From the sequence record PV231353.1: a stretch of DNA of 64,000 bases; one strand, 5' to 3'. Below, in pieces: positions 3,001-62,253 of the stretch (position 1 is the first letter of the stretch; the number at the start of each line of letters is the position of its first letter). The notes beneath the pieces are model-generated. The model saw nothing but the letters and a program-made list of their open reading frames with translations. It had not been told where the DNA came from and ran no database searches. The translations under genes were made by a program, and so were the position numbers.

Positions 3001-4471
3001 GATCGTCGTGTCGCCGTTCGACGGCAGCGTCTTCATCTCCTATCCGGGCAACGCGTCGGGCGCGATCGGCACGATCATCGTCACCCCGCCGGCGGCGAGC
3101 CTCACCCACGGGCACGACCTGTCGATCGCCCTGCCCGGCCCGATTATCATCACCGCGCCTGAGGCTCAACCGCAGGCGGGCGCGACGGTCTCGGGTGATA
3201 TCGGCACGATCATCGTCACCCCGCTCGACGGGCATGCCACCGGCGATACCGTCCTGGCTTCGGGGGATATCGGCACGATCGTCGTCTCCACCCCGGACGG
3301 CGAGGCGACGGGACGTGGTCTGGGCTCGGGTGCGATCGGCACGATCGTCATCACCCCGCCGGCCGCGACCCTGACGGCGGAGGCCAACAAGGCGGTCGCC
3401 CTGCCCGGCCCGATCATCGTCACCCCGCCGACCGGCGTGGGTCAGGTCCCCGCTGCGGCGGCGGGTGATCTGGCGACGATCACGATCACCAGCGTCCCCG
3501 AGGCGACGCTGTCGATCGGCCAGGACATCTCGGGCCAGATCGGAACCATCACGGTCACCCCGCCTGAGGCGTTCCCGCAAGGCTCGGTGTTCGTCGATCC
3601 GACCGACGAGATGGTCGTGCAGCTTCTGCCGCCGCAGGCCATCCTCTTCCAGGAAGCCACGGTCATCGTCGGCTTCCCGACGGTCTACCTGATCGCGCCC
3701 GAGGCCATCACCTATTCGCTGGCCGAGTTCGCCTCGATCACCTTGCTGCCGCCGGACGCCTATGTCGACGTTCCGCTGCCGCTGGGCAAGAACCGCATCC
3801 GCTATCGCCGCAACAACACCGCCGGGCTCGCCCCGACCAGCCTGCGGCCCAACGAAATCGCGCTGAACGAGACCGACGGCCTGCTGTTCACGCGTGACGG
3901 GTCCGGCGCGGTCAAAGCCACGCCGCTGGGCTTCCTGACTGGCGCGGGTGTGCCGCCGCCGGTCACCGACAACGGCAAGGTCCTGTCGGGCGGCCTGTCG
4001 TGGGAAACGCCCAACACCCGCTATCTCCTGCCGGTGCGCAACGCGCCGCCGGCTGGTACGCGCATCGCCCTGGGCGAGGGCGTCGTGGGGGTCTCGACCT
4101 TCACCCCGACGGTCGACGTCGTCTATACGCGGCCGTTCTTCGTGGCCAAGACCATCGACATCCAGGCGCTGTCGGTCGACGTCGTCACCACCGCCGCCGC
4201 CACCGCCGAACTCGGGCTGATCGGCTGGTCCCTGGCCGGCGCGCCCGGCGCGACCCTGGCTCTGGGCACGGTCAGTACGGCGACCACGGGGATCAAGACC
4301 GCGACCGGCACGGCCGTGACCTTGACGCCGGGCTGGTATGCCTCCACCTTCAAGGTCACCGGCGCGGCGGGGGCGGCGTTCCGGGCTCCGACCGCACCGA
4401 CGGCGATCGCGCCGGACCTCACCGTGACGCCGGGCGCCCCGGCGCCGGTCATGGCTGACCTGGAGGCCTAA
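2..4471 (+). CDS. Giant virion structural protein, 5'-partial (LamG-like tail end, Gly-rich region, ~30 'G(D/A)IGTIxVxxP' repeats); head-filament/fibre candidate
   Basis: Frame is open from base 2 (EFRATLGAARYVKPFTP, resembles the end of a LamG/ConA domain), so the track start at 89 is not the true start. Poly-Gly region is followed by many SGDIGTIIVTPPE-type repeats. Confidence 0.85.
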   Translation, partial: EFRATLGAARYVKPFTPASFAATSPAVPTLTSTVQAPQGSSGNAANNTATNYIAGRGVGAQTRLTAGTAPSGGDGQISYFIATSTVSASGPIGTVTVSGLTDAAAGAFYPLPPVGSVVVEPYTGARVNYEVTEPGGARIKVEMWGGGGGGSSANNTLTTNGGGGGGYTVIELDLVQGDRITVQTPSGGAGGVNAGSGSAINLGGYPDGGDGYRPALTALNCGGGGSARLWAQGNLAAVAGGGGGAAYGGGGYDFPGGAGGGNLGGPGAYDGVNATFPNGGGTQIAGGVGTANGFNGASLQGGHGGVVSGVANNGCGGGGGYYGGGGGGAYKSGGGGSGYVNTGLPGYRTGSTTGGSGNLPAGMSSPNYVSGIGVGSNGKGGAFTNGGNGRIVISVITPTPGNASGTIGTVDVSGLDNFGLLIGVPTGDIGTIDVVVPVGQSGQPGFAEGPLTTIGVGPPETIPQAQAVVIVPINDQTSILIEPPINAPLEVPGEGIGELPTIVVTGFESSLEAGATFDATDLGTILLVAPEADAVEIPPVETSGAIGTVIVTAPEASTQVIPPVETSGDIGTITVVTVTGAASWNNDVSTSGDIGTIVVTSPEADAVGDDLATGDLGTIIVTAPEGVAHQDANVSSDIGTISVYPIEGGQPADVVGDVPYIQVVTPGATVSASSGDDIALYADIGTIYLLQVYGQGYIISDDNFVHALPDPLIISITAAPEASARGDVHVVQSLPVINVDPPVPLSTGEGFVEGYTGDFIILVDPPVPLTELNANVNVAMPPPIVINGNDAETSLDVTIPFSDTAVFVSGPEALGLGFHGGEMGPPILVTPPEGGPEISVEIFVDPGTILVEAPRFHYIPPITVLPPEGVALDAHSAEASGDLGTITIGVPTGGYQANVAINLPLPTIFVNVPQVVVFASVAVSGDVGTITLTPPDATLTAGVDASFALPGPIVVSTPEATATAGSSAATSGALGTITITPPEGLVSTGTAAATSGAIGTIVVSPFDGSVFISYPGNASGAIGTIIVTPPAASLTHGHDLSIALPGPIIITAPEAQPQAGATVSGDIGTIIVTPLDGHATGDTVLASGDIGTIVVSTPDGEATGRGLGSGAIGTIVITPPAATLTAEANKAVALPGPIIVTPPTGVGQVPAAAAGDLATITITSVPEATLSIGQDISGQIGTITVTPPEAFPQGSVFVDPTDEMVVQLLPPQAILFQEATVIVGFPTVYLIAPEAITYSLAEFASITLLPPDAYVDVPLPLGKNRIRYRRNNTAGLAPTSLRPNEIALNETDGLLFTRDGSGAVKATPLGFLTGAGVPPPVTDNGKVLSGGLSWETPNTRYLLPVRNAPPAGTRIALGEGVVGVSTFTPTVDVVYTRPFFVAKTIDIQALSVDVVTTAAATAELGLIGWSLAGAPGATLALGTVSTATTGIKTATGTAVTLTPGWYASTFKVTGAAGAAFRAPTAPTAIAPDLTVTPGAPAPVMADLEA

Positions 4472-6294: not shown

Positions 6295-6370
6295 GTCGGT
6301 CTAGCTCATGGGGTAGAGCGGCGGTCTCCAAAACCGCGCGTGGCAGGTTCGAGTCCTGCGACCGGCGCCA
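6295..6370 (+). tRNA. tRNA-Trp(CCA)
   Basis: Cloverleaf; GCGGT-CTCCAAA-ACCGC; TTCGAGT T-loop; encoded CCA. Confidence 0.95.
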
Positions 6371-6375
6371 TTTCC

Positions 6376-6450
6376 GCGTCCATCGTATATGGGTTATTGC
6401 TTCGCGTTGCCAACGCGACGAACCGGGTTCGAGTCCCGGTGGACGCTCCA
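6376..6450 (+). tRNA. tRNA-Gly(GCC)
   Basis: TCGCG-TTGCCAA-CGCGA; acceptor GCGTCCA/TGGACGC; CCA. Confidence 0.93.
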
Positions 6451-6456
6451 ATCCAG

Positions 6457-6530
6457 GCGGATATAGCTCAAAGGGAGAGCTACTGCCTTCCAAGCAGAAG
6501 ATGCGGGTTCGAGCCCCGCTATCCGCTCCA
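6457..6530 (+). tRNA. tRNA-Gly(TCC)
   Basis: CTGC-CTTCCAA-GCAG; acceptor GCGGATA/TATCCGC; CCA. Confidence 0.95.
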
Positions 6531-6542
6531 AATTTTTCTTCC

Positions 6543-6580
6543 ATGACAAGCTTGACAGCCGTCGAGTTTTGTGAGAGCCT
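6543..6580 (+). promoter_or_regulatory. Promoter class 2 (GCTTGACA-N13-GTGAGAGCCT), copy 1
   Basis: Near-identical layout to 7340-7377. Confidence 0.6.
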
Positions 6581-6589
6581 TCAACCACT

Positions 6590-6652
6590 ATGACGCACCT
6601 CCTGACCCGTTACGAACGCGAGGCCACCGGCCTCGATACCACCACCGCCTAA
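6590..6652 (+). CDS. Micro-ORF MTHLLTRYEREATGLDTTTA (possible leader peptide)
   Basis: ATG directly after the promoter; stop followed by a hairpin with a T-run, then tRNA-Glu. Confidence 0.35.
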   Translation: MTHLLTRYEREATGLDTTTA

Positions 6653-6686
6653 AAGCGGTTCTGGTAACCGAGGCCTTTTGTCATGT

Positions 6687-6764
6687 GGCCCGGTCGTCTA
6701 GCGGTTTGCAGGATTCGTGACTTTCAATCACGAGAGCGGAGTTCGAGTCTCCGTCGGGCCTCCA
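6687..6764 (+). tRNA. tRNA-Glu(TTC)
   Basis: TCGTGA-CTTTCAA-TCACGA; CCA. Confidence 0.93.
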
Positions 6765-6786
6765 CCCCAAAGTCTCCTCTGAGCTT

Positions 6787-6861
6787 GGTGCGTTCGTATA
6801 TCGGTCAATACTCCGGATTGTCGATCCGGCAAGAGGGGTTCGATTCCCCTACGCACCGCCA
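6787..6861 (+). tRNA. tRNA-Asp(GTC)
   Basis: CCGGA-TTGTCGA-TCCGG; acceptor GGTGCGT/ACGCACC; CCA. Confidence 0.95.
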
Positions 6862-6873
6862 GGGCTCCTCCCT

Positions 6874-7032
6874 ATGCCTCTTCAGTCGGGTTCGAGCGAC
6901 GCCGTCGTCTCGCACAACATCGCCAAGCTGATCGACGAAGGCTACTCCAAGGAGCAGGCCGTGGCGATCGCTCTGTCCCAGGCGCGCAAGCCGCGCCGTC
7001 CGAAGGTCTCGCGCGGCTCGCGCCGGCGCTGA
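6874..7032 (+). CDS. Small basic protein [42 protein letters not shown]... (52 aa, below the track cutoff)
   Basis: Resembles the widespread small phage family 'MPLKxGxSxxxISxNI...QAVAIALxxAR' (recognised from memory, not searched). Confidence 0.8.
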
Positions 7033-7103
7033 TCTCGCCTCGCTAAAGCACCCCCAGGTTCCCGGCCTCGTCGTGAGGCCGCCTGCGGTCGCGCGAGGCT
7101 TCC

Positions 7104-7328
7104 ATGACCTTTCTTGATCTTCGTTCGCAGTCGAGCGCCGCGCTCCTGCGCCATGTGTCTTCCCGATCCCCGATGGCGGAAGCGGCTCGCACCGAGTTGC
7201 TGACCCGAGGCCTCGTCCCGCTCCTCACGCGGCACAACGGCTGGCGCCTCGCCCCGAGCGAGCCCTTTCCGCAGCATCTCATCCCGCGCCCCGATCCGCT
7301 CGCGAGGTTCACGTGGCGGGCGGGATGA
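7104..7328 (+). CDS. Hypothetical protein
   Basis: 74-aa ORF in the gap between the small basic protein and the next promoter. Confidence 0.5.
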   Translation: MTFLDLRSQSSAALLRHVSSRSPMAEAARTELLTRGLVPLLTRHNGWRLAPSEPFPQHLIPRPDPLARFTWRAG

Positions 7329-7339
7329 AGATTTTTCTC

Positions 7340-7377
7340 ACGACATGCTTGACATCCGTTTGAAGTTGTGAGAGCCT
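7340..7377 (+). promoter_or_regulatory. Promoter class 2 (GCTTGACA-N13-GTGAGAGCCT), copy 2
   Basis: CACGACATGCTTGACATCCGTTTGAAGTTGTGAGAGCCT. Confidence 0.6.
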
Positions 7378-7470
7378 ACCCAACGTCACGGATCACGACA
7401 CTCTTCGGAGTGCAAAAGCGTGGTCCTTCGTCTTCCCAGGCCGCCAGCGGGCGGCCGTTCGAGAGTCATC

Positions 7471-7608
7471 ATGTTCGCCTTGTCGCATAACAGCCTGAGC
7501 CTGAAAGCCGCCTCCCCGGCGACGCTTTCGCTTGCGCTGTCTCCGACGGCCGCGACGCCCTCGACCAAGCCGACCCACTCGGCCTCGCACTCGACGGATC
7601 ACCTCTAG
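7471..7608 (+). CDS. Ser/Ala/Thr-rich micro-ORF (45 aa), possible leader peptide
   Basis: ATG at 7471 within track ORF 7420..7608; lies between a promoter and a terminator. Confidence 0.35.
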   Translation: MFALSHNSLSLKAASPATLSLALSPTAATPSTKPTHSASHSTDHL

Positions 7609-7673
7609 GGTATCTCGTCTCGGGTGCAGGCCTTGGAGCCGCACCCGCTACCTACATCCTGTAGACCTAGCGC

Positions 7674-7710
7674 AAGGCGGCTCCCAGCAAGGAGACCGCC
7701 TTTTCTTTTT
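7674..7710 (+). terminator. Intrinsic terminator upstream of the Pro tRNAs
   Basis: AAGGCGG-CTCC-cagcaa-GGAG-a-CCGCC followed by TTTTCTTTTT. Confidence 0.7.
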
Positions 7711-7722
7711 CGCGTTGATCAT

Positions 7723-7798
7723 CGGGGTGTAGCTCAGTCGGTAGAGCGCTCGGTTCGGGACCGAGAGGCCGTGGGTTCGAGTCCCGCCACCCAGACCA
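7723..7798 (+). tRNA. tRNA-Pro(CGG)
   Basis: CTCGG-TTCGGGA-CCGAG; CCA. Confidence 0.95.
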
Positions 7799-7805
7799 AC
7801 GCCAT

Positions 7806-7880
7806 CGGGATGTAGCTCAGCGGTAGAGCGCGCGGCTGGGGGCCGCGAGGCCGCAGGTTCGAGACCTGCCACCCCGACCA
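7806..7880 (+). tRNA. tRNA-Pro(GGG)
   Basis: CGCGG-CTGGGGG-CCGCG; CCA. Confidence 0.93.
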
Positions 7881-7885
7881 ACAAT

Positions 7886-7958
7886 GCTGCTGCGCCTGGA
7901 TCGGCGCCGGCCCCTTGGTATGGGGAAGTAGAAGGTTCAATTCCTTCCGGCAGCACCA
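7886..7958 (+). tRNA. tRNA-Thr(GGT), atypical D arm
   Basis: Acceptor GCTGCTG/CGGCAGC, CCCC-TTGGTAT-GGGG, GAAGG-TTCAATT-CCTTC, CCA. Confidence 0.75.
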
Positions 7959-7963
7959 ACAAC

Positions 7964-8033
7964 GCCGATGCCTCTAGGAGGACACGTCTTTCGTAATGAC
8001 GTCAGGTGGGTGCGATCCCCACTTTCGGCTCCA
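7964..8033 (+). tRNA. Degenerate tRNA-like element, probable Thr(CGT)
   Basis: GCCGA/TCGGC acceptor plus TCCA; ACGTC-tTTCGTAAt-GACGT; T-loop TGCGATC; truncated D arm. Confidence 0.55.
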
Positions 8034-8070
8034 TCAAGATGATCGAGGAGAGATCGTAGACGAAACAAAT

Positions 8071-8157
8071 GGATGTGTCACCTCAGTGGCGAGAGGACCG
8101 GGCTCTTAATCCGGCAGCGAAAGCTCATCGTGGGTTCGAGTCCCACCACATCCTCCA
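8071..8157 (+). tRNA. tRNA-Lys(CTT) with long variable arm
   Basis: CCGGG-CTCTTAA-TCCGG; V-arm AGC-GAAA-GCT; U73; CCA. Confidence 0.9.
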
Positions 8158-8163
8158 AACTAT

Positions 8164-8254
8164 GCACGAGTGACCCGAGTGGCGAAGGGCGTCGACTTTT
8201 AATCGACTAGGCGTCCGCGCCTCACCGAGGGTTCGAGTCCCTCCTCGTGCTCCA
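8164..8254 (+). tRNA. tRNA-Lys(TTT) with long variable arm
   Basis: GTCGA-CTTTTAA-TCGAC; V-arm AGGCG-TCCG-CGCCT; U73; CCA. Confidence 0.9.
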
Positions 8255-8260
8255 GGTTGT

Positions 8261-8344
8261 GCGAAAGTGGCGGAACGGCAGACGCACTGGTCTCAGGTAC
8301 CAGCGACTTCGGTCATGAGGGTTCGAGTCCCTCCTTTCGTACCA
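8261..8344 (+). tRNA. tRNA-Leu(CAG)
   Basis: CTGGT-CTCAGGT-ACCAG; type II; CCA. Confidence 0.93.
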
Positions 8345-8351
8345 ACGACAT

Positions 8352-8436
8352 GCCGGTCTGGCGGAAATGGCAGACGCAGTGGCTTCAAGTCCCACCGCCT
8401 TCGGGCGTCCCGGTTCGAGGCCGGGGACCGGCACCA
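8352..8436 (+). tRNA. tRNA-Leu(CAA)
   Basis: GTGG(c)-TTCAAGT-(c)CCAC; type II; CCA. Confidence 0.9.
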
Positions 8437-8441
8437 TTTGA

Positions 8442-8530
8442 TGCGAAGTGGCGGAACTTTGGTAGACGCACCGGCATGAGAGGCCGGCGCCCTTCGGGGC
8501 GTGAGGGTTCGAGTCCCTTCTTCGCGACCA
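8442..8530 (+). tRNA. tRNA-Leu(GAG)
   Basis: CCGGC-ATGAGAG-GCCGG; type II; CCA. Confidence 0.9.
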
Positions 8531-8537
8531 ATATCAT

Positions 8538-8609
8538 GCCGGACGGCGCAGGCGCGCGGGGGAGGTTGTGTCCCTCCTTGGCTCCGATCGTTACGGAGGT
8601 TCGGTTCCA
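8538..8609 (+). tRNA. Non-canonical tRNA-His(GTG)-like
   Basis: Acceptor GCCGGAC/GTTCGGT (G1:U72), GGAGG-TTGTGTC-CCTCC, T arm CTCCG-ATCGTTA-CGGAG, TCCA. Confidence 0.6.
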
Positions 8610-8614
8610 GTTAC

Positions 8615-8685
8615 GGGGTATGCGCAGGGCGCAGGCATCCTTTGCAAGGAAGTCGGGGTGGGTTCGAGTCCCACATACTCCACCA
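8615..8685 (+). tRNA. tRNA-Ala(TGC), minimal D arm
   Basis: GGGGTAT/ATACTCC with the G3:U70 Ala determinant; TCC-TTTGCAA-GGA; CCA. Confidence 0.8.
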
Positions 8686-8689
8686 ACAC

Positions 8690-8778
8690 GGTAGGTTGGC
8701 TGAGAGGCCGAAGGCGCCCGTTTCGAAAACGGGAGAACCGCAAGGTTCCGTGGGTTCGAGATCCCACACCTACCTCCA
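8690..8778 (+). tRNA. tRNA-Ser(CGA)
   Basis: CCCGT-TTCGAAA-ACGGG; long V arm; T-loop reads TTCGAGAT (one extra G). Confidence 0.92.
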
Positions 8779-8782
8779 ACAT

Positions 8783-8871
8783 GGATGTATGGCTGAGAGG
8801 CCGAAGGCGCCCGCTTGGAAAGCGGGTGAACCGCAAGGTTCCGTAGGTTCGAGATCCTACTGCATCCGCCA
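8783..8871 (+). tRNA. tRNA-Ser(GGA)
   Basis: CCCGC-TTGGAAA-GCGGG; long V arm; T-loop TTCGAGAT (one extra G). Confidence 0.92.
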
Positions 8872-8875
8872 ACAT

Positions 8876-8962
8876 GGTAGGTGGTTCCGGCCTGGGGCCG
8901 GACCCGGTTGCTAACCGGCCGGAGCCGCAAGGCTTGGGGTTCGATTCCTCCTCCTACCGCCA
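8876..8962 (+). tRNA. tRNA-Ser(GCT)
   Basis: CCGG-TTGCTAA-CCGG; V arm AGCC-GCAA-GGCT; GCCA end. Confidence 0.88.
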
Positions 8963-9237
8963 CTTCGATGTTGACACCCGCGACGCGGCCTGTCATACGT
9001 CACGACAGAGCGAACACCCCCGGCCGGGTTTGTTGTCATACCGGGTCGTCACGCCCCGTCGGGGCTCTAGTAGCTCTTCGTGTGGAGTTTTCCGCCTCCC
9101 TCCCAGACAAGGAGGCGGACCCAACCAACATCGCGATCTCCCGTGATCGTCGGCGACGGGCGCCGTCAGAGACCTTTGCCTGCGCGGCTCCGCTGCGGCC
9201 CTGGTCTCGTCCCGACCAAATTTTTTCGTCGTGGTGC

Positions 9238-9266
9238 TTGACACTGCGAAACTGTTCTGCTAGGGT
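9238..9266 (+). promoter_or_regulatory. Sigma70-type promoter
   Basis: TTGACA-N15-GCTAGGG. Confidence 0.7.
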
Positions 9267-9273
9267 TCACGTC

Positions 9274-9372
9274 ATGAGCAAGACCTATCGTCAATTTGTG
9301 CGCCAGATTCAGGTCGTCCGGAATATCCGGGCGGGCCGCTCGCGCATGGCTGACGAAGGGTTCAGGGACTAG
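9274..9372 (+). CDS. Micro-ORF MSKTYRQFVRQIQVVRNIRAGRSRMADEGFRD (possible leader peptide)
   Basis: Begins ~8 nt after the -10 box and precedes a terminator. Confidence 0.45.
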   Translation: MSKTYRQFVRQIQVVRNIRAGRSRMADEGFRD

Positions 9373-9402
9373 GTCCCACACCACGTTCAACCAGCTTTCG
9401 AG

Positions 9403-9434
9403 AGGCCCGCCTGGAAACCCCAGGCGGGCCTTTT
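9403..9434 (+). terminator. Intrinsic terminator upstream of tRNA-Tyr
   Basis: AGGCCCGCCTGG-AAAC-CCAGGCGGGCCT-TTT. Confidence 0.85.
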
Positions 9435-9475
9435 CGCATTTCAGCTTCAGATCACGGAGATCGCCAAACAGACAC

Positions 9476-9560
9476 GGATGCTTAAAGCTGGAGGGCTCCA
9501 GCCGGGGACTGTAAATCCCCTCTCTTCGGAGGAGTGGTTCGATCCCACAAGCATCCACCA
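9476..9560 (+). tRNA. tRNA-Tyr(GTA)
   Basis: GGGGA-CTGTAAA-TCCCC; V arm; CCA. Confidence 0.88.
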
Positions 9561-9565
9561 ACCAC

Positions 9566-9641
9566 GGACTCGTAGCTCAGCAGGTAGAGCGCCGGCTTGA
9601 AACCCCGGAGGTCGGAGGTTCGACTCCTCCCGTTTCCACCA
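9566..9641 (+). tRNA. tRNA-Phe(GAA)
   Basis: CCGG(c)-TTGAAAC-(c)CCGG; two acceptor-stem mismatches; CCA. Confidence 0.88.
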
Positions 9642-9646
9642 ACAAC

Positions 9647-9722
9647 GCCCGATGAGCCAGATGGGAAGGCGCCGCCGTGACATGGCGGGATTGAGAAGGT
9701 TCGATTCCTTCATCAGGCACCA
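9647..9722 (+). tRNA. tRNA-Val(GAC)
   Basis: CCGCC-GTGACAT-GGCGG; CCA. Confidence 0.88.
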
Positions 9723-9724
9723 AT

Positions 9725-9800
9725 GCAAGTGTAGCTCAGTTGGTAGAGCAGCGGACCGATAATCCGCCTGTCCCTGGTTCGAGTCCAGGCATTTGCACCA
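9725..9800 (+). tRNA. tRNA-Ile(GAT)
   Basis: GCGGA-CCGATAA-TCCGC (C33); CCA. Confidence 0.92.
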
Positions 9801-9807
9801 ATTCTGA

Positions 9808-9882
9808 TGTGGCATAGCTCAGGGGTAGAGCGCGCGCTTGATAAGCGTGAGGTCGGGGGTTCGAAGCCCTCTGCCACTACCA
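9808..9882 (+). tRNA. tRNA-Ile(GAT), second copy
   Basis: CGCGC-TTGATAA-GCGTG; CCA. Confidence 0.92.
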
Positions 9883-9915
9883 GTTTCCAGGCCGGCGGAG
9901 ATGCGCCGAACCTGA

Positions 9916-9991
9916 TGGCGTTTAGCATAGTGGGAGTGCAGGGGTGTCACATACCTCGATCGAACTGGTTCGATTCCAGTAACGCCAACCA
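9916..9991 (+). tRNA. tRNA-Val(CAC)
   Basis: GGGGT-GTCACAT-ACCTC; acceptor TGGCGTT/AACGCCA; CCA. Confidence 0.88.
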
Positions 9992-9996
9992 AACGT

Positions 9997-10070
9997 TGAG
10001 GGTTCGTCTAACGGTAGGACGGCTGGGTCTGGTCCAGCTAATCTAGGTTCGAGTCCTAGCCCCTCATCCA
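9997..10070 (+). tRNA. tRNA-Gln(CTG)
   Basis: GCTGG-GTCTGGT-CCAGC; CCA. Confidence 0.9.
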
Positions 10071-10078
10071 AATACTGT

Positions 10079-10154
10079 TCAGGGTTAGTTTAGCTGGTAA
10101 AACACTGGGTTTTGGCCCCGGCGTCGCTAGGTTCGAAGCCTGCACCCTGATCCA
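10079..10154 (+). tRNA. tRNA-Gln(TTG)
   Basis: CTGGG-TTTTGGC-CCCGG; bulged T stem; CCA. Confidence 0.88.
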
Positions 10155-10165
10155 TTTGAGTTTAT

Positions 10166-10240
10166 TCCAGTCAATGCACAAGGTGTGCAGCGGCACTGTT
10201 AATGCCTGTGAGCCCGGTTCGATTCCGGGGTCTGGAGCCA
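10166..10240 (+). tRNA. tRNA-Asn(GTT)
   Basis: GGCA-CTGTTAA-TGCC; GCCA end. Confidence 0.9.
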
Positions 10241-10266
10241 ACACGCCGGCCTCGGCCGGCACATGC

Positions 10267-10350
10267 GCCCTGGTAACCGAGGGGGATTACGAGATCCCTT
10301 AGTCGTAGCAGGAGTTGAAAAGGGTGGTTCAAATCCACTCCAGGGTGCCA
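10267..10350 (+). tRNA. Non-canonical tRNA-Arg(ACG)-like
   Basis: Acceptor GCCCTGG/CCAGGGT-G-CCA; T arm GGTGG-TTCAAAT-CCACT; anticodon arm becomes GGGA-TTACGAA-TCCC if the G at 10293 is removed; D arm nearly absent; long V region. Confidence 0.55.
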
Positions 10351-10357
10351 AATTCAT

Positions 10358-10440
10358 AGCGCGCAGGCCGAGCAGGATTATCGTCAGGCGTCGCCCTCCG
10401 AAGGCGAAGAGGCCCGGTTCGAGTCCGGGGCGCGCTGCCA
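10358..10440 (+). tRNA. tRNA-Arg(CCG), enlarged D region
   Basis: TCGCC-CTCCGAA-GGCGA; acceptor AGCGCGC/GCGCGCT; GCCA. Confidence 0.85.
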
Positions 10441-10443
10441 TTC

Positions 10444-10522
10444 GCGCAGGTAGCTCAACGGACCCAGAGCGGCCGTCTTCTACACGGAAGGTTGGGGGTT
10501 CGAGATCCCTCCCTGCGCGCCA
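10444..10522 (+). tRNA. tRNA-Arg(TCT)
   Basis: CCGT-CTTCTAC-ACGG; T-loop TTCGAGAT (one extra G); GCCA. Confidence 0.9.
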
Positions 10523-59904: not shown

Positions 59905-59993
59905 TGGAGCTTCGGGAGGGACTCGAACCCTCATAGGTGTTCCCACCAGCAGAGATTTGCAATCCCGCGCCTAACCTCTCAGTCCACCGAAGC
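59905..59993 (-). tRNA. tRNA-Cys(GCA) with long variable arm
   Basis: Reverse complement: GCTTCGG/CCGAAGC-T-CCA, GGGA-TTGCAAA-TCTC, V arm GGTG-GGAA-CACC. Confidence 0.88.
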
Positions 59994-60219: not shown

Positions 60220-61092
60220 CGATGGGCTGAGACTACACCCATCAGCAATCCCGCTTCGAGGATTATTCCCCAGGTGCGACCCCAGGTATTCCCTCGACGT
60301 CCACCAGACCCCTTGCGGTAGTCCAGTCCGAGATCATCGCCGCCGTTCTTGCGCACCCCGAAGGGATTGCGGGTCTGGCGTTTGACCCATCATGGCGAAC
60401 TACTCGACAGTTCCTTCCCCGCTGGGCTTGCGACCCACTCACCGGCGCTAACCGGCTGACGAAGCTCTTCCTATCGACACCTCGCGGGCTTGCGACCCTT
60501 GAGATGACTCCGTTACCCGAAGGCCGGAGCATTTGGCGACTTACGTCCGCCACTGGACCAGTCTTTGCGTTTTTCATCGAAGCGGGGATTGAACCCGCGA
60601 CCGACAGCTTAAGAGGCTGTTGCACTACCACTGTGCTATTCGCAAACCCACCAAGACGTGCTGGTCCAGTTGTTCCCAGAGCTTTTGACCCCAGAAATGC
60701 AACACGCCTCATATCTTTCGCCTTGCGGGCTACTCGACTGCTCTTCAGGACCCCGTCTCCCCCAACCTTTCGGCCAGGATGCCCAGCACCCCTCGAACTG
60801 AAGCAAAGCTCTTCACCGCGAAGTGTCGAACCCTGCAACCCAAACGGTTATCCGTACTCCCTAGACACGCTTGCACGGGATAGTCCGCTTGCGACGGACT
60901 GGCGGTTAAAGCCTCGGAGTTACCCCGGCCCCGCCTTGTCTCCCACGGTCTTCAGGTCTATCCCCTTTTGCAAGAGGCGGCCAGCTTCCCAGCCCGGACC
61001 CGTCGGCTTCCTCTGTCCTCTTGCGAGGTCGGGCGGCCTATGGGAGACCGTCCCTGTCACCCCGTCGCCGGGGCTTTCGTCAGAAGCGACGA
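60220..61092 (-). ncRNA. Large ornate ncRNA (~870 nt), GOLLD-like, with embedded tRNA-like domain
   Basis: Consensus promoter and terminator; about ten GNRA-capped hairpins; repeated GTCGAGTAG and GAAGAGC modules; 3' pseudoknot. Family name is inferred, not searched. Confidence 0.72.
60575..60645 (-). tRNA. tRNA-Lys(CTT)-like domain inside the large RNA, without CCA
   Basis: GCAC-AGTGGTA-GTGC, ACAGC-CTCTTAA-GCTGT, GCGGG-TTCAATC-CCCGC; only 4-bp acceptor; no CCA. Confidence 0.75.
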
Positions 61093-61181: not shown

Positions 61182-61209
61182 TTGACATTCTCGGAGCCGC
61201 GTGCTAGGT
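61182..61209 (+). promoter_or_regulatory. Sigma70 promoter of tmRNA (divergent)
   Basis: TTGACA-N15-GCTAGGT. Confidence 0.8.
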
Positions 61210-61211
61210 GT

Positions 61212-61590
61212 CGGAAATCGTTGTAATTCGGACAACGGAACTGGCGGCAAGACAGGGGTGCGAATCCCCTCGCCTCCACCATCGACGCCCGGCGCTGGGA
61301 GTACGCGACTCCTGGGCAGGGAGTGTTACCCTGGCGGGCTGCGGCCCGAGCCAAAGGTAGCCGGGCGTCGTTGATGGGGGCGACTAGCTTTCGATTGGCG
61401 CTCGGGACTGAAAGACGCAACGGTGGGTGACCTCCACATCGGCTTGCCGGTGATCGGGTCAGGCAACAGTAAATGTCGCCGCCAATGACAACGACGTCGT
61501 GGCTTTCGCCTCGGCTCGTGAAGCCATCGCCGCCTAATAAGCGGTAGAGGAGCCCGCCGGGAGCTTGGCAACAGAATCCCGGCAACCCCC
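61212..61590 (+). ncRNA. ssrA: Circularly permuted two-piece tmRNA
   Basis: Acceptor piece ends ...AGGGG-TGCGAAT-CCCCT-CGCCTCC-A-CCA (61281). Coding piece starts GGGGGCG (61376), giving G3:U70. Tag frame ANDNDVVAFASAREAIAA-TAA-TAA (61481-61540); GGCAACAGAA near the 3' end. Confidence 0.93.
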
Positions 61591-61718
61591 TTTCGCAGGC
61601 GGGAACACCAACAGGCGATCTGTCGGGCGACCGATTTCCGATCCGTGTTCCCGTCTTCGAAAGGTGGTCAGGCCTACCCTCTTGGTGTGCTATCCAAGGG
61701 TCTGGCCACTTTACAGAA

Positions 61719-62168: not shown

Positions 62169-62253
62169 GGTACGGTGGCTCGACAGGTAAGGCATCGGCC
62201 TCATAAGCCGAGGGTTCGTCCCAATCCTGGTTCAAATCCAGGTCGTACCTCCA
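62169..62253 (+). tRNA. tRNA(CAT), elongator Met or Ile2, with long variable arm
   Basis: GGTACGG/TCGTACC-T-CCA; TCGGC-CTCATAA-GCCGA; V arm GGG-TTCGT-CCC. Confidence 0.88.

Follow-up and report, generated by a model that had tools for sequence, protein, structure and literature searches.

Two neighbouring genes in the tRNA array of a Caulobacter phage raise the question of which amino acid is carried by a tRNA that combines a lysine anticodon with the long variable arm of a class II tRNA. The genes lie in a 64,000-nucleotide stretch of record PV231353.1 (hereafter the window), which corresponds to Caulobacter phage RBC57, a phiCbK-like phage of the Dolichocephalovirinae, with 100% identity across the tRNA array. 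ARAGORN called 24 tRNA genes at positions 6295-10522 of the window. The two genes in question, both on the plus strand and both ending with an encoded CCA, are tRNA-Lys(CUU) at 8071..8157 (87 nt) and tRNA-Lys(UUU) at 8164..8254 (91 nt); their class II shape was seen with ARAGORN, with Rfam and by folding. Judged by their sequences, they are members of a lineage of long-arm Lys and Asn tRNAs that is widespread and carried mainly by phages, and they are probably genuine, working lysine tRNAs built on a class II body.

Structure of the Two Lysine tRNA Genes

By direct reading, the CUU gene was parsed as GGATGTG-TCA-CCTC-AGTGGCGA-GAGG-A-CCGGG-CTCTTAA-TCCGG-C-AGC-GAAA-GCT-CATC-GTGGG-TTCGAGT-CCCAC-CACATCC-T-CCA and the UUU gene as GCACGAG-TGA-CCC-G-AGTGGCGA-A-GGG-C-GTCGA-CTTTTAA-TCGAC-T-AGGCG-TCCG-CGCCT-CACC-GAGGG-TTCGAGT-CCCTC-CTCGTGC-T-CCA. 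Both possess a 7-bp acceptor stem, a 5-bp T stem and the T loop TTCGAGT. The D arm, of the form CCY-N-AGTGGCGA-N-RGG, has a stem of 3-4 bp and an 8-nt loop, with A14, G18-G19 and A21 in register. The anticodon arm is made of a 5-bp stem and a 7-nt loop C-U-NUU-A-A (CTCTTAA and CTTTTAA) in which U33 and A37 are present. ARAGORN and direct reading agreed on the anticodons, CTT at 8105..8107 (loop C-T-CTT-A-A) and TTT at 8198..8200. The variable region measures 15 nt in Lys(CUU) (8115..8129; a C, the stem AGC/GCT closed by a GAAA tetraloop, and a CATC tail) and 19 nt in Lys(UUU) (8208..8226; a T, the stem AGGCG/CGCCT with a TCCG loop, and a CACC tail). The discriminator base is U73 in each tRNA, at 8154 and 8251, followed by CCA at 8155-8157 and 8252-8254, respectively. 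The short variable loop of 4-5 nt and the A73 that mark canonical bacterial tRNA-Lys are absent from both genes.

A preliminary description of this DNA had reported the arm hairpins AGC-GAAA-GCT and AGGCG-TCCG-CGCCT, lengths of 87 and 91 nt and a U discriminator in both tRNAs. Direct reading bore out all three to the letter, the lengths with the encoded CCA counted in. The description of the D loops as Leu/Ser-like had to be amended. Both loops read A14-G15-U16-G18-G19, with 2 nt separating A14 from G18 and a G15-C48 pair, a Ser/Tyr-like arrangement; the likeness to Ser (and Tyr) stands, and the likeness to Leu falls on the spacing of 2 and on G15-C48.

Against the Rfam tRNA model (RF00005, gathering score 29), the CUU gene scored 51.5 bits (E 3e-9) and the UUU gene 46.8 bits (E 6e-8), both above the gathering score and within the range of the ordinary tRNAs of the phage. 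The minimum-free-energy fold of the CTT tRNA was exactly the five-arm cloverleaf. For the TTT tRNA the cloverleaf lay 1.1 kcal/mol above the minimum, and it was the minimum-energy fold of the orthologue in phage CcrRogue. A promoter and terminator scan of the tRNA array returned nothing above chance.

The connector between the acceptor and D stems is three nucleotides long, the canonical number being two. In Lys(CUU) it is TCA at 8078..8080 (+), as seen by direct reading and in the ARAGORN bracket string 'sss'. In Lys(UUU) it is TGA at 8171..8173 (+), when the gene is placed in the same register of G13-A14-G15-U16-G18-G19 as the CUU gene; the other reading, that of ARAGORN, has an A10.C25 mismatch and no nucleotide 26. 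A fold with 8/4 helices, like that of allo-tRNAs, would absorb the additional nucleotide. It was excluded because position 8 faces C65: T8 would oppose C65 in both genes. A 3-nt connector is also present in 30 of 82 viral long-arm Lys tRNAs.

Conservation in Caulobacter and Brevundimonas Phages

The entire 184-nt pair was found by BLAST in 23 records of phiCbK-like Caulobacter phages, with 94-100% identity. In CcrRogue, pair 27-43 of the CUU tRNA changes from C-G to A-U and its arm loop from GAAA to GCAA; in the UUU tRNA of the same phage the acceptor pair 5-68 changes from G-C to A-U, and the arm persists with a stem of 4 bp and a loop of 5 nt. The CUU tRNA of Brevundimonas phage Gurke has exchanged two pairs of the anticodon stem and two of the arm, with the pairing left intact. 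The conservation of the pair and these compensatory changes in the stems are more than chance.

Some records depart from this pattern. Most of the CUU gene is missing from CcrBL10 and BL57, which kept the UUU gene, so that neither Lys gene is individually indispensable. A G30.A40 mismatch is found in the anticodon stem of the UUU tRNA of Ccr2, Ccr10 and Ccr29, and the Kabachok-type Brevundimonas copy is aberrant, with G18A and the T loop TGCGAGT. The GenBank records label the genes as tRNA-Lys, though inconsistently, the UUU gene being absent from the RBC57 record and called tRNA-Ser in the Ccr29 record. The missing or mislabelled UUU gene, the lack of an intact CUU gene in two phages, the anticodon-stem mismatch and the aberrant copy would all suit decaying pseudo-tRNA copies that are simply carried along in the array. 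Such decay is very improbable when set against the 94-100% identity in phiCbK-like phages, where changes are compensatory and not disruptive, against the strong covariation of all helices, extra arm included, across the family described below, and against Rfam scores that match the range of ordinary phage tRNAs. The phiCbK genome paper gives the tRNA numbers and the codon matches and does not mention arm length.

At the position of Lys(UUU), a tRNA-like sequence that escaped calling is present in Gurke (L003 ~3100-3187) and in Kabachok (L004 ~3100-3190); it has the loop CTTTTAA, U73 and CCA, and an odd, long hairpin replaces its D arm.

A Lineage of Long-Arm Lys and Asn tRNAs

BLAST also matched long tRNA-Lys genes of Xanthomonas phage XacN1 and of an uncultured phage of 642 kb, as well as a long tRNA-Asn of another uncultured phage, 635 kb in length. 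In the XacN1 gene the 15-nt variable region is identical to that of the CUU gene of the window, and the discriminator is A73. IMG/VR was then scanned with the pattern CTCTTAA followed 19-30 nt downstream by GGTTCRANTCC, which gave at least 120 loci. Among the matches listed, 55 of 120 loci had an ARAGORN call for Lys(ctt) with a length of 81-93 nt. Long forms of Lys(ttt) numbered 20 and those of Asn(gtt) 9 in the same set, along with a few long tRNAs for Thr, Cys, His and Ile/Met. In a second scan of the same first slice of the database, any spacing of 12-30 nt was allowed, and the loci were thus chosen regardless of arm length. It yielded about 9 long and 87 ordinary Lys(ctt) genes, which puts the long-arm form at about one tenth of the viral Lys(CUU) genes in this slice. 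In these arm-unbiased loci the long form also accounted for 4 of 46 Lys(ttt) genes and 2 of 45 Asn genes.

Several members are found in cultured phages. Rhodobacter phage RcXuper possesses a CUU gene with A73 and a UUU gene with U73, both long-arm, in one genome. The others are Xanthomonas phages X1 and BUDD, Mesorhizobium phage Cp1R7A-A1, Roseobacter phage DSS3P8, Ruegeria phage V10, Microcystis phage Mwe-JY26 and Caulobacter phage CcrSC. In the phiKZ-like Pseudomonas phages the member is a tRNA-Asn(GTT) with U1-A72, G73 and the arm GGC-GAAA-GCC-CACC, whose signature is that of the Lys family (U1B, Phikzvirus, L350:1492-1578 (+)). One family member (L027) was compared by BLAST with the cultured phages and had no match.

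The long-spacing pattern was also applied to one genome per prokaryotic species, where it gave 5 tRNA calls among the 120 matches listed. Two of these resemble archaeal genes with introns, and three lie within arrays of 9-12 tRNAs over a few kilobases. Long-arm members are thus rare in these records, and confined to tRNA arrays. The preliminary description had stated that long arms in bacteria are normally confined to Leu, Ser, Tyr and Sec tRNAs; this holds for the cellular genome records sampled and fails for phage tRNA arrays.

One array on a 1.6-Mb contig of an uncultured alphaproteobacterium (L209:1347-5645) consists of 12 tRNAs, and its neighbours on the contig are genes of the ordinary cellular kind, for a TPP enzyme and for a LuxR-type regulator. 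The array includes a U73 long-arm Lys(CTT) much like that of the window, together with short-arm Leu(GAG) and Leu(CAG) tRNAs.

Arm Signature and Covariation

Among 82 distinct viral long-arm Lys tRNAs, the arm usually opened with 1 unpaired nucleotide, followed by a stem of 3-4 bp, a loop of 4 nt that was most often GAAA or GCAA, and a tail of 3-4 nt (CAYC or CAAC). The stem ranges from 3 to 5 bp across the family, the tetraloop is as a rule of the GNRA type, and both arms of the window show the features of the lineage, namely a 7/5 cloverleaf, a tetraloop and a tail ending in C. In Ser tRNAs of the same loci the arm has a stem of 5-6 bp and a 1-nt tail, in Leu tRNAs the tail is 1-2 nt, and in Tyr tRNAs the stem is 3-4 bp and the tail 3 nt. 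On these measures the geometry of the Lys arm is Tyr-like, and the D loop and Levitt pair are of the Ser/Tyr kind.

RNAalifold, run on a MAFFT alignment of 76 family members, recovered the acceptor, anticodon and T helices. It missed the D and extra arms because length variation misaligned them, and the arm was therefore tested on the subclass with a 15-nt variable region, in which the columns are ungapped. This sample held 27 sequences, none of them from the Caulobacter and Brevundimonas phages already aligned. The arm stem was 93.8% paired, with two-sided changes at all three pairs (in 17, 15 and 11 sequences). None of 500 shuffles attained the values observed for the anticodon, arm and T helices taken together, and registers slid by 1-3 columns were paired in just 33-46% of the cells.

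Amino Acid Identity

The amino acid identity of the pair was argued from the known identity rules (reviewed in PMC9976931). Lysyl-tRNA synthetases (LysRS) of both classes read U35 and U36; A73 is used in addition by the class II enzyme, and position 73 is marginal for the class I enzyme (PMC9976931). Caulobacter crescentus codes for a class I LysRS (PMC1475646). The discriminator of the 82 distinct long-arm Lys tRNAs is A73 in 59 and U73 in 23; G and C do not occur. Among the long-arm Asn tRNAs, 10 of 10 have G73 and 7 of 10 have U1-A72, both of them marks peculiar to bacterial tRNA-Asn. In experiments, moving the anticodon and G73 (N73) into tRNA-Lys confers Asn identity (PMC9976931). The marks of the long-arm Lys and Asn tRNAs match this anticodon-plus-N73 swap, and the family therefore resembles a natural identity swap. 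Long-arm His members have C73, and long-arm Cys members mostly U73.

The identity elements of the other long-arm tRNAs were then compared with the pair. Leucyl-tRNA synthetase (LeuRS) requires A73, A15-U48 and a proper placement of G18-G19, and tyrosyl-tRNA synthetase (TyrRS) requires A73 and the GUA anticodon (PMC9976931). The Leu marks (A73, A15-U48 and G18-G19 located 3-4 nt past A14) are lacking in the window pair, which has U73, G15-C48 and a spacing of 2. The same trend holds in the long-arm Lys family, with G15-C48 in 53 of 75 and 2 nt from A14 to G18 in 52 of 77; among phage Leu tRNAs, A15-U48 is present in 49 of 53 and A73 in every one. The Tyr marks, GUA and A73, are lacking as well, U35 and the arm geometry being the sole shared features.

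Seryl-tRNA synthetase (SerRS) disregards the anticodon and leans chiefly on the long arm, and also on G1-C72 and G2-C71 (PMC9976931). The arm geometry of Ser tRNAs, those of RBC57 included, with a stem of at least 5 bp and 0-2 nt before the T stem, is not that of the pair, which has 3 bp and a 4-nt tail in the CUU tRNA and 5 bp and a 4-nt tail in the UUU tRNA. The UUU gene carries C2-G71, listed as a SerRS anti-determinant (Table 3 in PMC9976931), and the CUU gene carries G1-C72, G2-C71 and U73.

The long arm, U73 and, in the CUU tRNA, the Ser-like first three acceptor pairs might permit charging by SerRS or by another synthetase that serves class II tRNAs, in which case Lys codons would partly be read as Ser, Leu or Tyr. 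SerRS is blind to the anticodon and dependent on the arm, U73 allo-tRNAs were partly serylated in E. coli (Mukai et al., PMC5389517), and ordinary and long-arm Lys(CUU) tRNAs stand side by side in some phages. On the other side, the stem of 3 bp and tail of 4 nt contrast with the 5-6 bp and 1 nt of every Ser tRNA of the same loci, C2-G71 of the UUU tRNA is an anti-determinant, and A73 (for Leu and Tyr) and A15-U48 (for Leu) are absent. In the homologous long-arm Asn tRNAs the first acceptor pair is U1-A72, a mark specific to Asn and unlike that of Ser. More than 80 distinct members retain the Lys anticodon, which fits selection through a synthetase that reads the anticodon. Lys codons represent 4.4% of 16,031 phage codons (663 AAG and 38 AAA). 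Misreading them is unlikely because of this share, and efficient missense incorporation would harm the phage proteins. We therefore regard mis-acylation as improbable. The preliminary description had offered mis-acylated tRNAs that read Lys codons as Ser or Leu as one of two alternatives; U73, G15-C48, the non-Ser arm, C2-G71 in the UUU tRNA and the 4.4% of Lys codons all disfavour it. Its other alternative, nuclease-resistant Lys tRNAs on a foreign class II scaffold, fared better. The scaffold part stood as far as sequence goes, the scaffold being conserved and widespread in phages, and the cognate acceptor marks of the relatives and the class I LysRS of the host fit with the lysine part; evasion of nucleases would be plausible.

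A role of the pair as lysine tRNAs is also in keeping with the composition of the array. The tRNA set of the phage tracks its most-used codons, AAG among these, and no other complete tRNA-Lys was found in the 64-kb window, which holds both tRNA clusters seen here.

A number of observations weigh against lysine identity or against an ordinary function of the pair. The acceptor stem of the CUU tRNA equals that of the tRNA-Ser(GGA) of the phage at 6 of 7 positions, and the CUU tRNA carries G1-C72, G2-C71, A3-U70 and C11-G24. A genuine Ser tRNA of RBC57, Ser(CGA), has U73, and G73 or U73 together with a long arm was taken by Mukai et al. as a sign of Ser identity in allo-tRNAs (PMC5389517). Given G1-C72, G2-C71, A3-U70 and the U73 of Ser(CGA), some serylation of the CUU species may occur. 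U73 is also unique to the long-arm form, the ordinary tRNA-Lys located beside long-arm ones always having A73. In several phages the CUU anticodon is found on an ordinary and also on a long-arm tRNA, a coexistence that hints at non-redundant roles. The extra nucleotide ahead of the D stem is unusual and may bear on the L-shape. The loss of most of the CUU gene in CcrBL10 and BL57 and the G30.A40 mismatch in Ccr2, Ccr10 and Ccr29 belong on the same side.

With these reservations, we propose that the two genes give rise to lysine tRNAs in the following manner. The pair would be transcribed with the tRNA array, its CCA already encoded. The Caulobacter class I LysRS would charge it with lysine by way of U35 and U36, position 73 being of little weight, and the charged tRNAs would decode AAG and AAA. 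U73, G15-C48, the short distance from A14 to G18 and the non-Ser geometry of the arm would jointly exclude LeuRS, TyrRS and SerRS. The choice of U73 might itself be explained in this way: on a class II body, A73 would invite LeuRS or TyrRS and G73 would invite SerRS, and U73 would avoid all of them, at no cost with a class I LysRS. The idea that U73 simply mirrors hosts with a class I LysRS was examined in the loci with U73, which span 36-66% G+C; some of them show the alpha-proteobacterial hallmark of tRNA-His (no G-1, A73), the numbers being small. Avoidance of LeuRS, TyrRS and SerRS is weakened as the whole story of U73, since U73 members are also found in loci of 36-47% G+C and the neighbouring ordinary tRNA-Lys keep A73.

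Possible Reasons for a Long-Arm Body

If the pair carries lysine, the reason for its body remains to be considered. tRNA-Lys is a favoured target of immune tRNases, namely PrrC, RloC, the AriB component of PARIS and a bacterial Schlafen, and AriB cuts Thr and Asn tRNAs too. Phage T5's tRNA-Lys(UUU) escapes PARIS by the anticodon-stem substitutions U39A and A41C (PMC11464382, PMC12409363). The window pair keeps the canonical 3' side of the anticodon arm, U36-A37-A38-U39-C40, with C (CUU) or G (UUU) at position 41. As U39-C40 of the AriB target is kept, any protection would need to come from shape.

Our preferred guess, a tentative one, is that a shape unlike that of host tRNA-Lys allows the pair to escape host enzymes that attack tRNA-Lys. 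In more general terms, the change of body class might be a phage counter-defence in which the anticodon and acceptor marks are kept, a long arm is added to Lys, Asn, Thr and other tRNAs, and the arm is stripped from many Leu tRNAs, the RBC57 pair being its instance in a Caulobacter phage; this is possible but rather doubtful. The viral copies would then evade binding and cleavage by host tRNases that recognise cellular tRNAs by their shape. The tRNA-Leu genes of 85 viral loci (L250-L349), which had been chosen by their ordinary tRNA-Lys, are of interest in this respect. A short variable loop of 4-7 nt was found in 42 of 80 distinct tRNA-Leu genes, all 42 with A73 and a Leu-type D arm (e.g., L262:854-930 (-) and L270:3043-3119 (-)). 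The rule that separates class I from class II tRNAs is therefore broken in the opposite direction too. As an alternative origin, a Tyr- or Ser-like tRNA may long ago have switched its anticodon, the long-arm body being a remnant that is tolerated. The occurrence of the long form in Lys, Asn and Thr tRNAs, the coexistence of two CUU forms and the armless Leu tRNAs fit selection for being unlike the host; drift within the tolerance of the synthetases fits them equally well.

The same targets lend themselves to another explanation, according to which the pair would not serve as translation adaptors. The two RNAs would be tRNA-shaped decoys or regulators, acting as bait for a tRNA-Lys nuclease or a modification enzyme, or would donate amino acids outside protein synthesis. 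PrrC, RloC, PARIS AriB and Schlafen prefer tRNA-Lys, the anticodon arm of the pair keeps the target sequence U36-A-A-U39-C40, the AriB study raises roles of viral tRNAs beyond the rescue of translation, and the unusual connector and arm could hamper use by the ribosome. However, the features needed for translation are kept and covary (7/5 helix, TTCGAGT, G18-G19, U33, A37 and CCA), the tRNA set of the phage follows the most-used codons including AAG, and the window yielded no other complete tRNA-Lys. We hold a role outside translation to be quite unlikely, and return to the pair as lysine tRNAs in the comparison with known systems below.

Other RNA Elements in the Window

Several other elements of the window depart from the common tRNA forms. 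A long-arm tRNA-Cys(GCA) of 89 nt with U73 is located at 59905-59993 (-; Rfam 33.8 bits), and a long-arm tRNA of 85 nt with the anticodon CAT (Met or Ile2) and U73 at 62169-62253 (+; 47.4 bits). An unannotated Sec-like tRNA at 8876-8958 (+) has the anticodon GCT (Ser AGY), G73 and CCA, and scored 44 bits against the Rfam tRNA-Sec model (gathering 47). Its acceptor stem of 8 bp includes a U.U mismatch, its T stem has 4 bp and its D stem is long; it matches the (8/4) tRNA-Ser of alpha-proteobacterial phage clusters (Mukai et al. 2017, PMC5389517). The T loop of the two Ser tRNAs in RBC57 (8690-8871, +) measures 8 nt, TTCGAGAT, and their Ccr29 orthologues the usual 7 nt. In the Ser(CGA) tRNA of RBC57, U73 replaces G73.

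Two tRNA-like elements upstream of the Lys pair are absent from the ARAGORN calls and from the RBC57 record. In the first, at 7886-7956 (+), the acceptor stem is paired, A73 and CCA are present, and the anticodon loop reads TTGGTAT (GGT, Thr). The second, at ~7962-8050 (+), ends with T-CCA and has a 9-nt loop, TTTCGTAAT, centred on CGT (possibly Thr). Both are kept in Gurke (L003 ~2815-2960), and the CcrBL10 annotation has a tRNA-Thr(GGT) at the corresponding place. A Thr tRNA is stated to be absent from these phages in the phiCbK paper.

In the second half of the window, a GOLLD RNA (RF02032) was detected by Rfam at 60224-60710 (-) with 169.4 bits (gathering 150). A 74-nt 'tRNA-Lys' (CUU) called by ARAGORN at 60573-60646 (-) was rejected as a tRNA-like module of this GOLLD RNA; its match to the tRNA model is limited to positions 4-67, and the acceptor ends are unpaired. 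A two-piece (permuted) tmRNA lies at 61189-61628 (+), with the tag peptide VAANDNDVVAFASAREAIAA according to ARAGORN and an Rfam tmRNA_permuted match of 71.4 bits at 61219-61537.

Comparison with Known Systems and Significance

The window pair resembles canonical class I tRNA-Lys, such as the tRNA-Lys(UUU) of E. coli and of T5, in the Lys anticodons, in the anticodon arm G30-A31/C32-U33-NUU-A37-A38/U39-C40, in the 7-bp acceptor and 5-bp T stems and in its probable synthetase. It differs by a paired arm of 15-19 nt in place of a 5-nt loop, by U73 instead of A73, by the extra nucleotide and by a D arm of the Ser/Tyr type. Like the T5 tRNA-Lys(UUU), it would be a phage-encoded replacement of the tRNA most attacked by immune nucleases. 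The T5 tRNA escapes through U39A and A41C, whereas the window pair keeps U39-C40 and differs at position 41 and in the shape of the body. Bacterial tRNA-Tyr is alike in the arm (1 nt, a stem of 3-4 bp, a loop of 4-5 nt and an unpaired 3' tail of 3-4 nt), in the D arm CCC-GAGYGG...GGG and in U35, but has the GUA anticodon and A73 (24 of 24) where the window pair has Lys anticodons and U73. A common descent of the long-arm Lys and Tyr tRNAs is a conjecture.

Two groups of unusual tRNAs also invite comparison. The allo-tRNAs and the (8/4) Ser and His tRNAs of alpha-proteobacterial phages (PMC5389517) share with the pair the long arm, anticodons other than those of Leu, Ser and Tyr or odd cloverleaves, frequent U73 and a location in phage clusters. 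Allo-tRNAs differ in their 8/4 or 9/3 helices, a long D stem with a tetraloop and a presumed Ser identity, the Lys pair having 7/5 helices and an ordinary D arm. The nev-tRNAs of nematodes (PMC3333845) carry Gly or Ile anticodons on a class II body, just as the Lys pair carries an anticodon of the class I type. They have kept Leu elements and are leucylated, while the Lys pair lacks A73 and A15-U48, and its relatives bear cognate Lys or Asn marks. The literature searched in full text, which leaves out most subscription journals, yielded no account of such tRNAs for Lys or Asn in phages. The genes themselves were already annotated; as far as found, their class II nature, the lineage and its spread appear undescribed.

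The classification of tRNAs, the prediction of isotypes and the understanding of synthetase recognition all build on the rule that, apart from Sec tRNAs, long arms occur in Leu, Ser and, in bacteria, Tyr tRNAs only. The Lys/Asn lineage breaks this rule. This occurs in a sizeable fraction of phage arrays, including those of tractable phages such as phiCbK on Caulobacter NA1000, XacN1, RcXuper and the phiKZ-like phages. On the practical side, annotation pipelines drop or mislabel long-arm Lys genes. If the members are lysylated, LysRS of both classes, and asparaginyl-tRNA synthetase or a non-discriminating aspartyl-tRNA synthetase, would tolerate a large extra arm. The lineage would then constitute a natural series of Lys/Asn identity swaps and would provide ready scaffolds unlike ordinary tRNA-Lys in shape. 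If this shape protects against PrrC, RloC, PARIS or Schlafen, it would represent a new escape route for phages, distinct from the known point mutations in the anticodon loop or stem.

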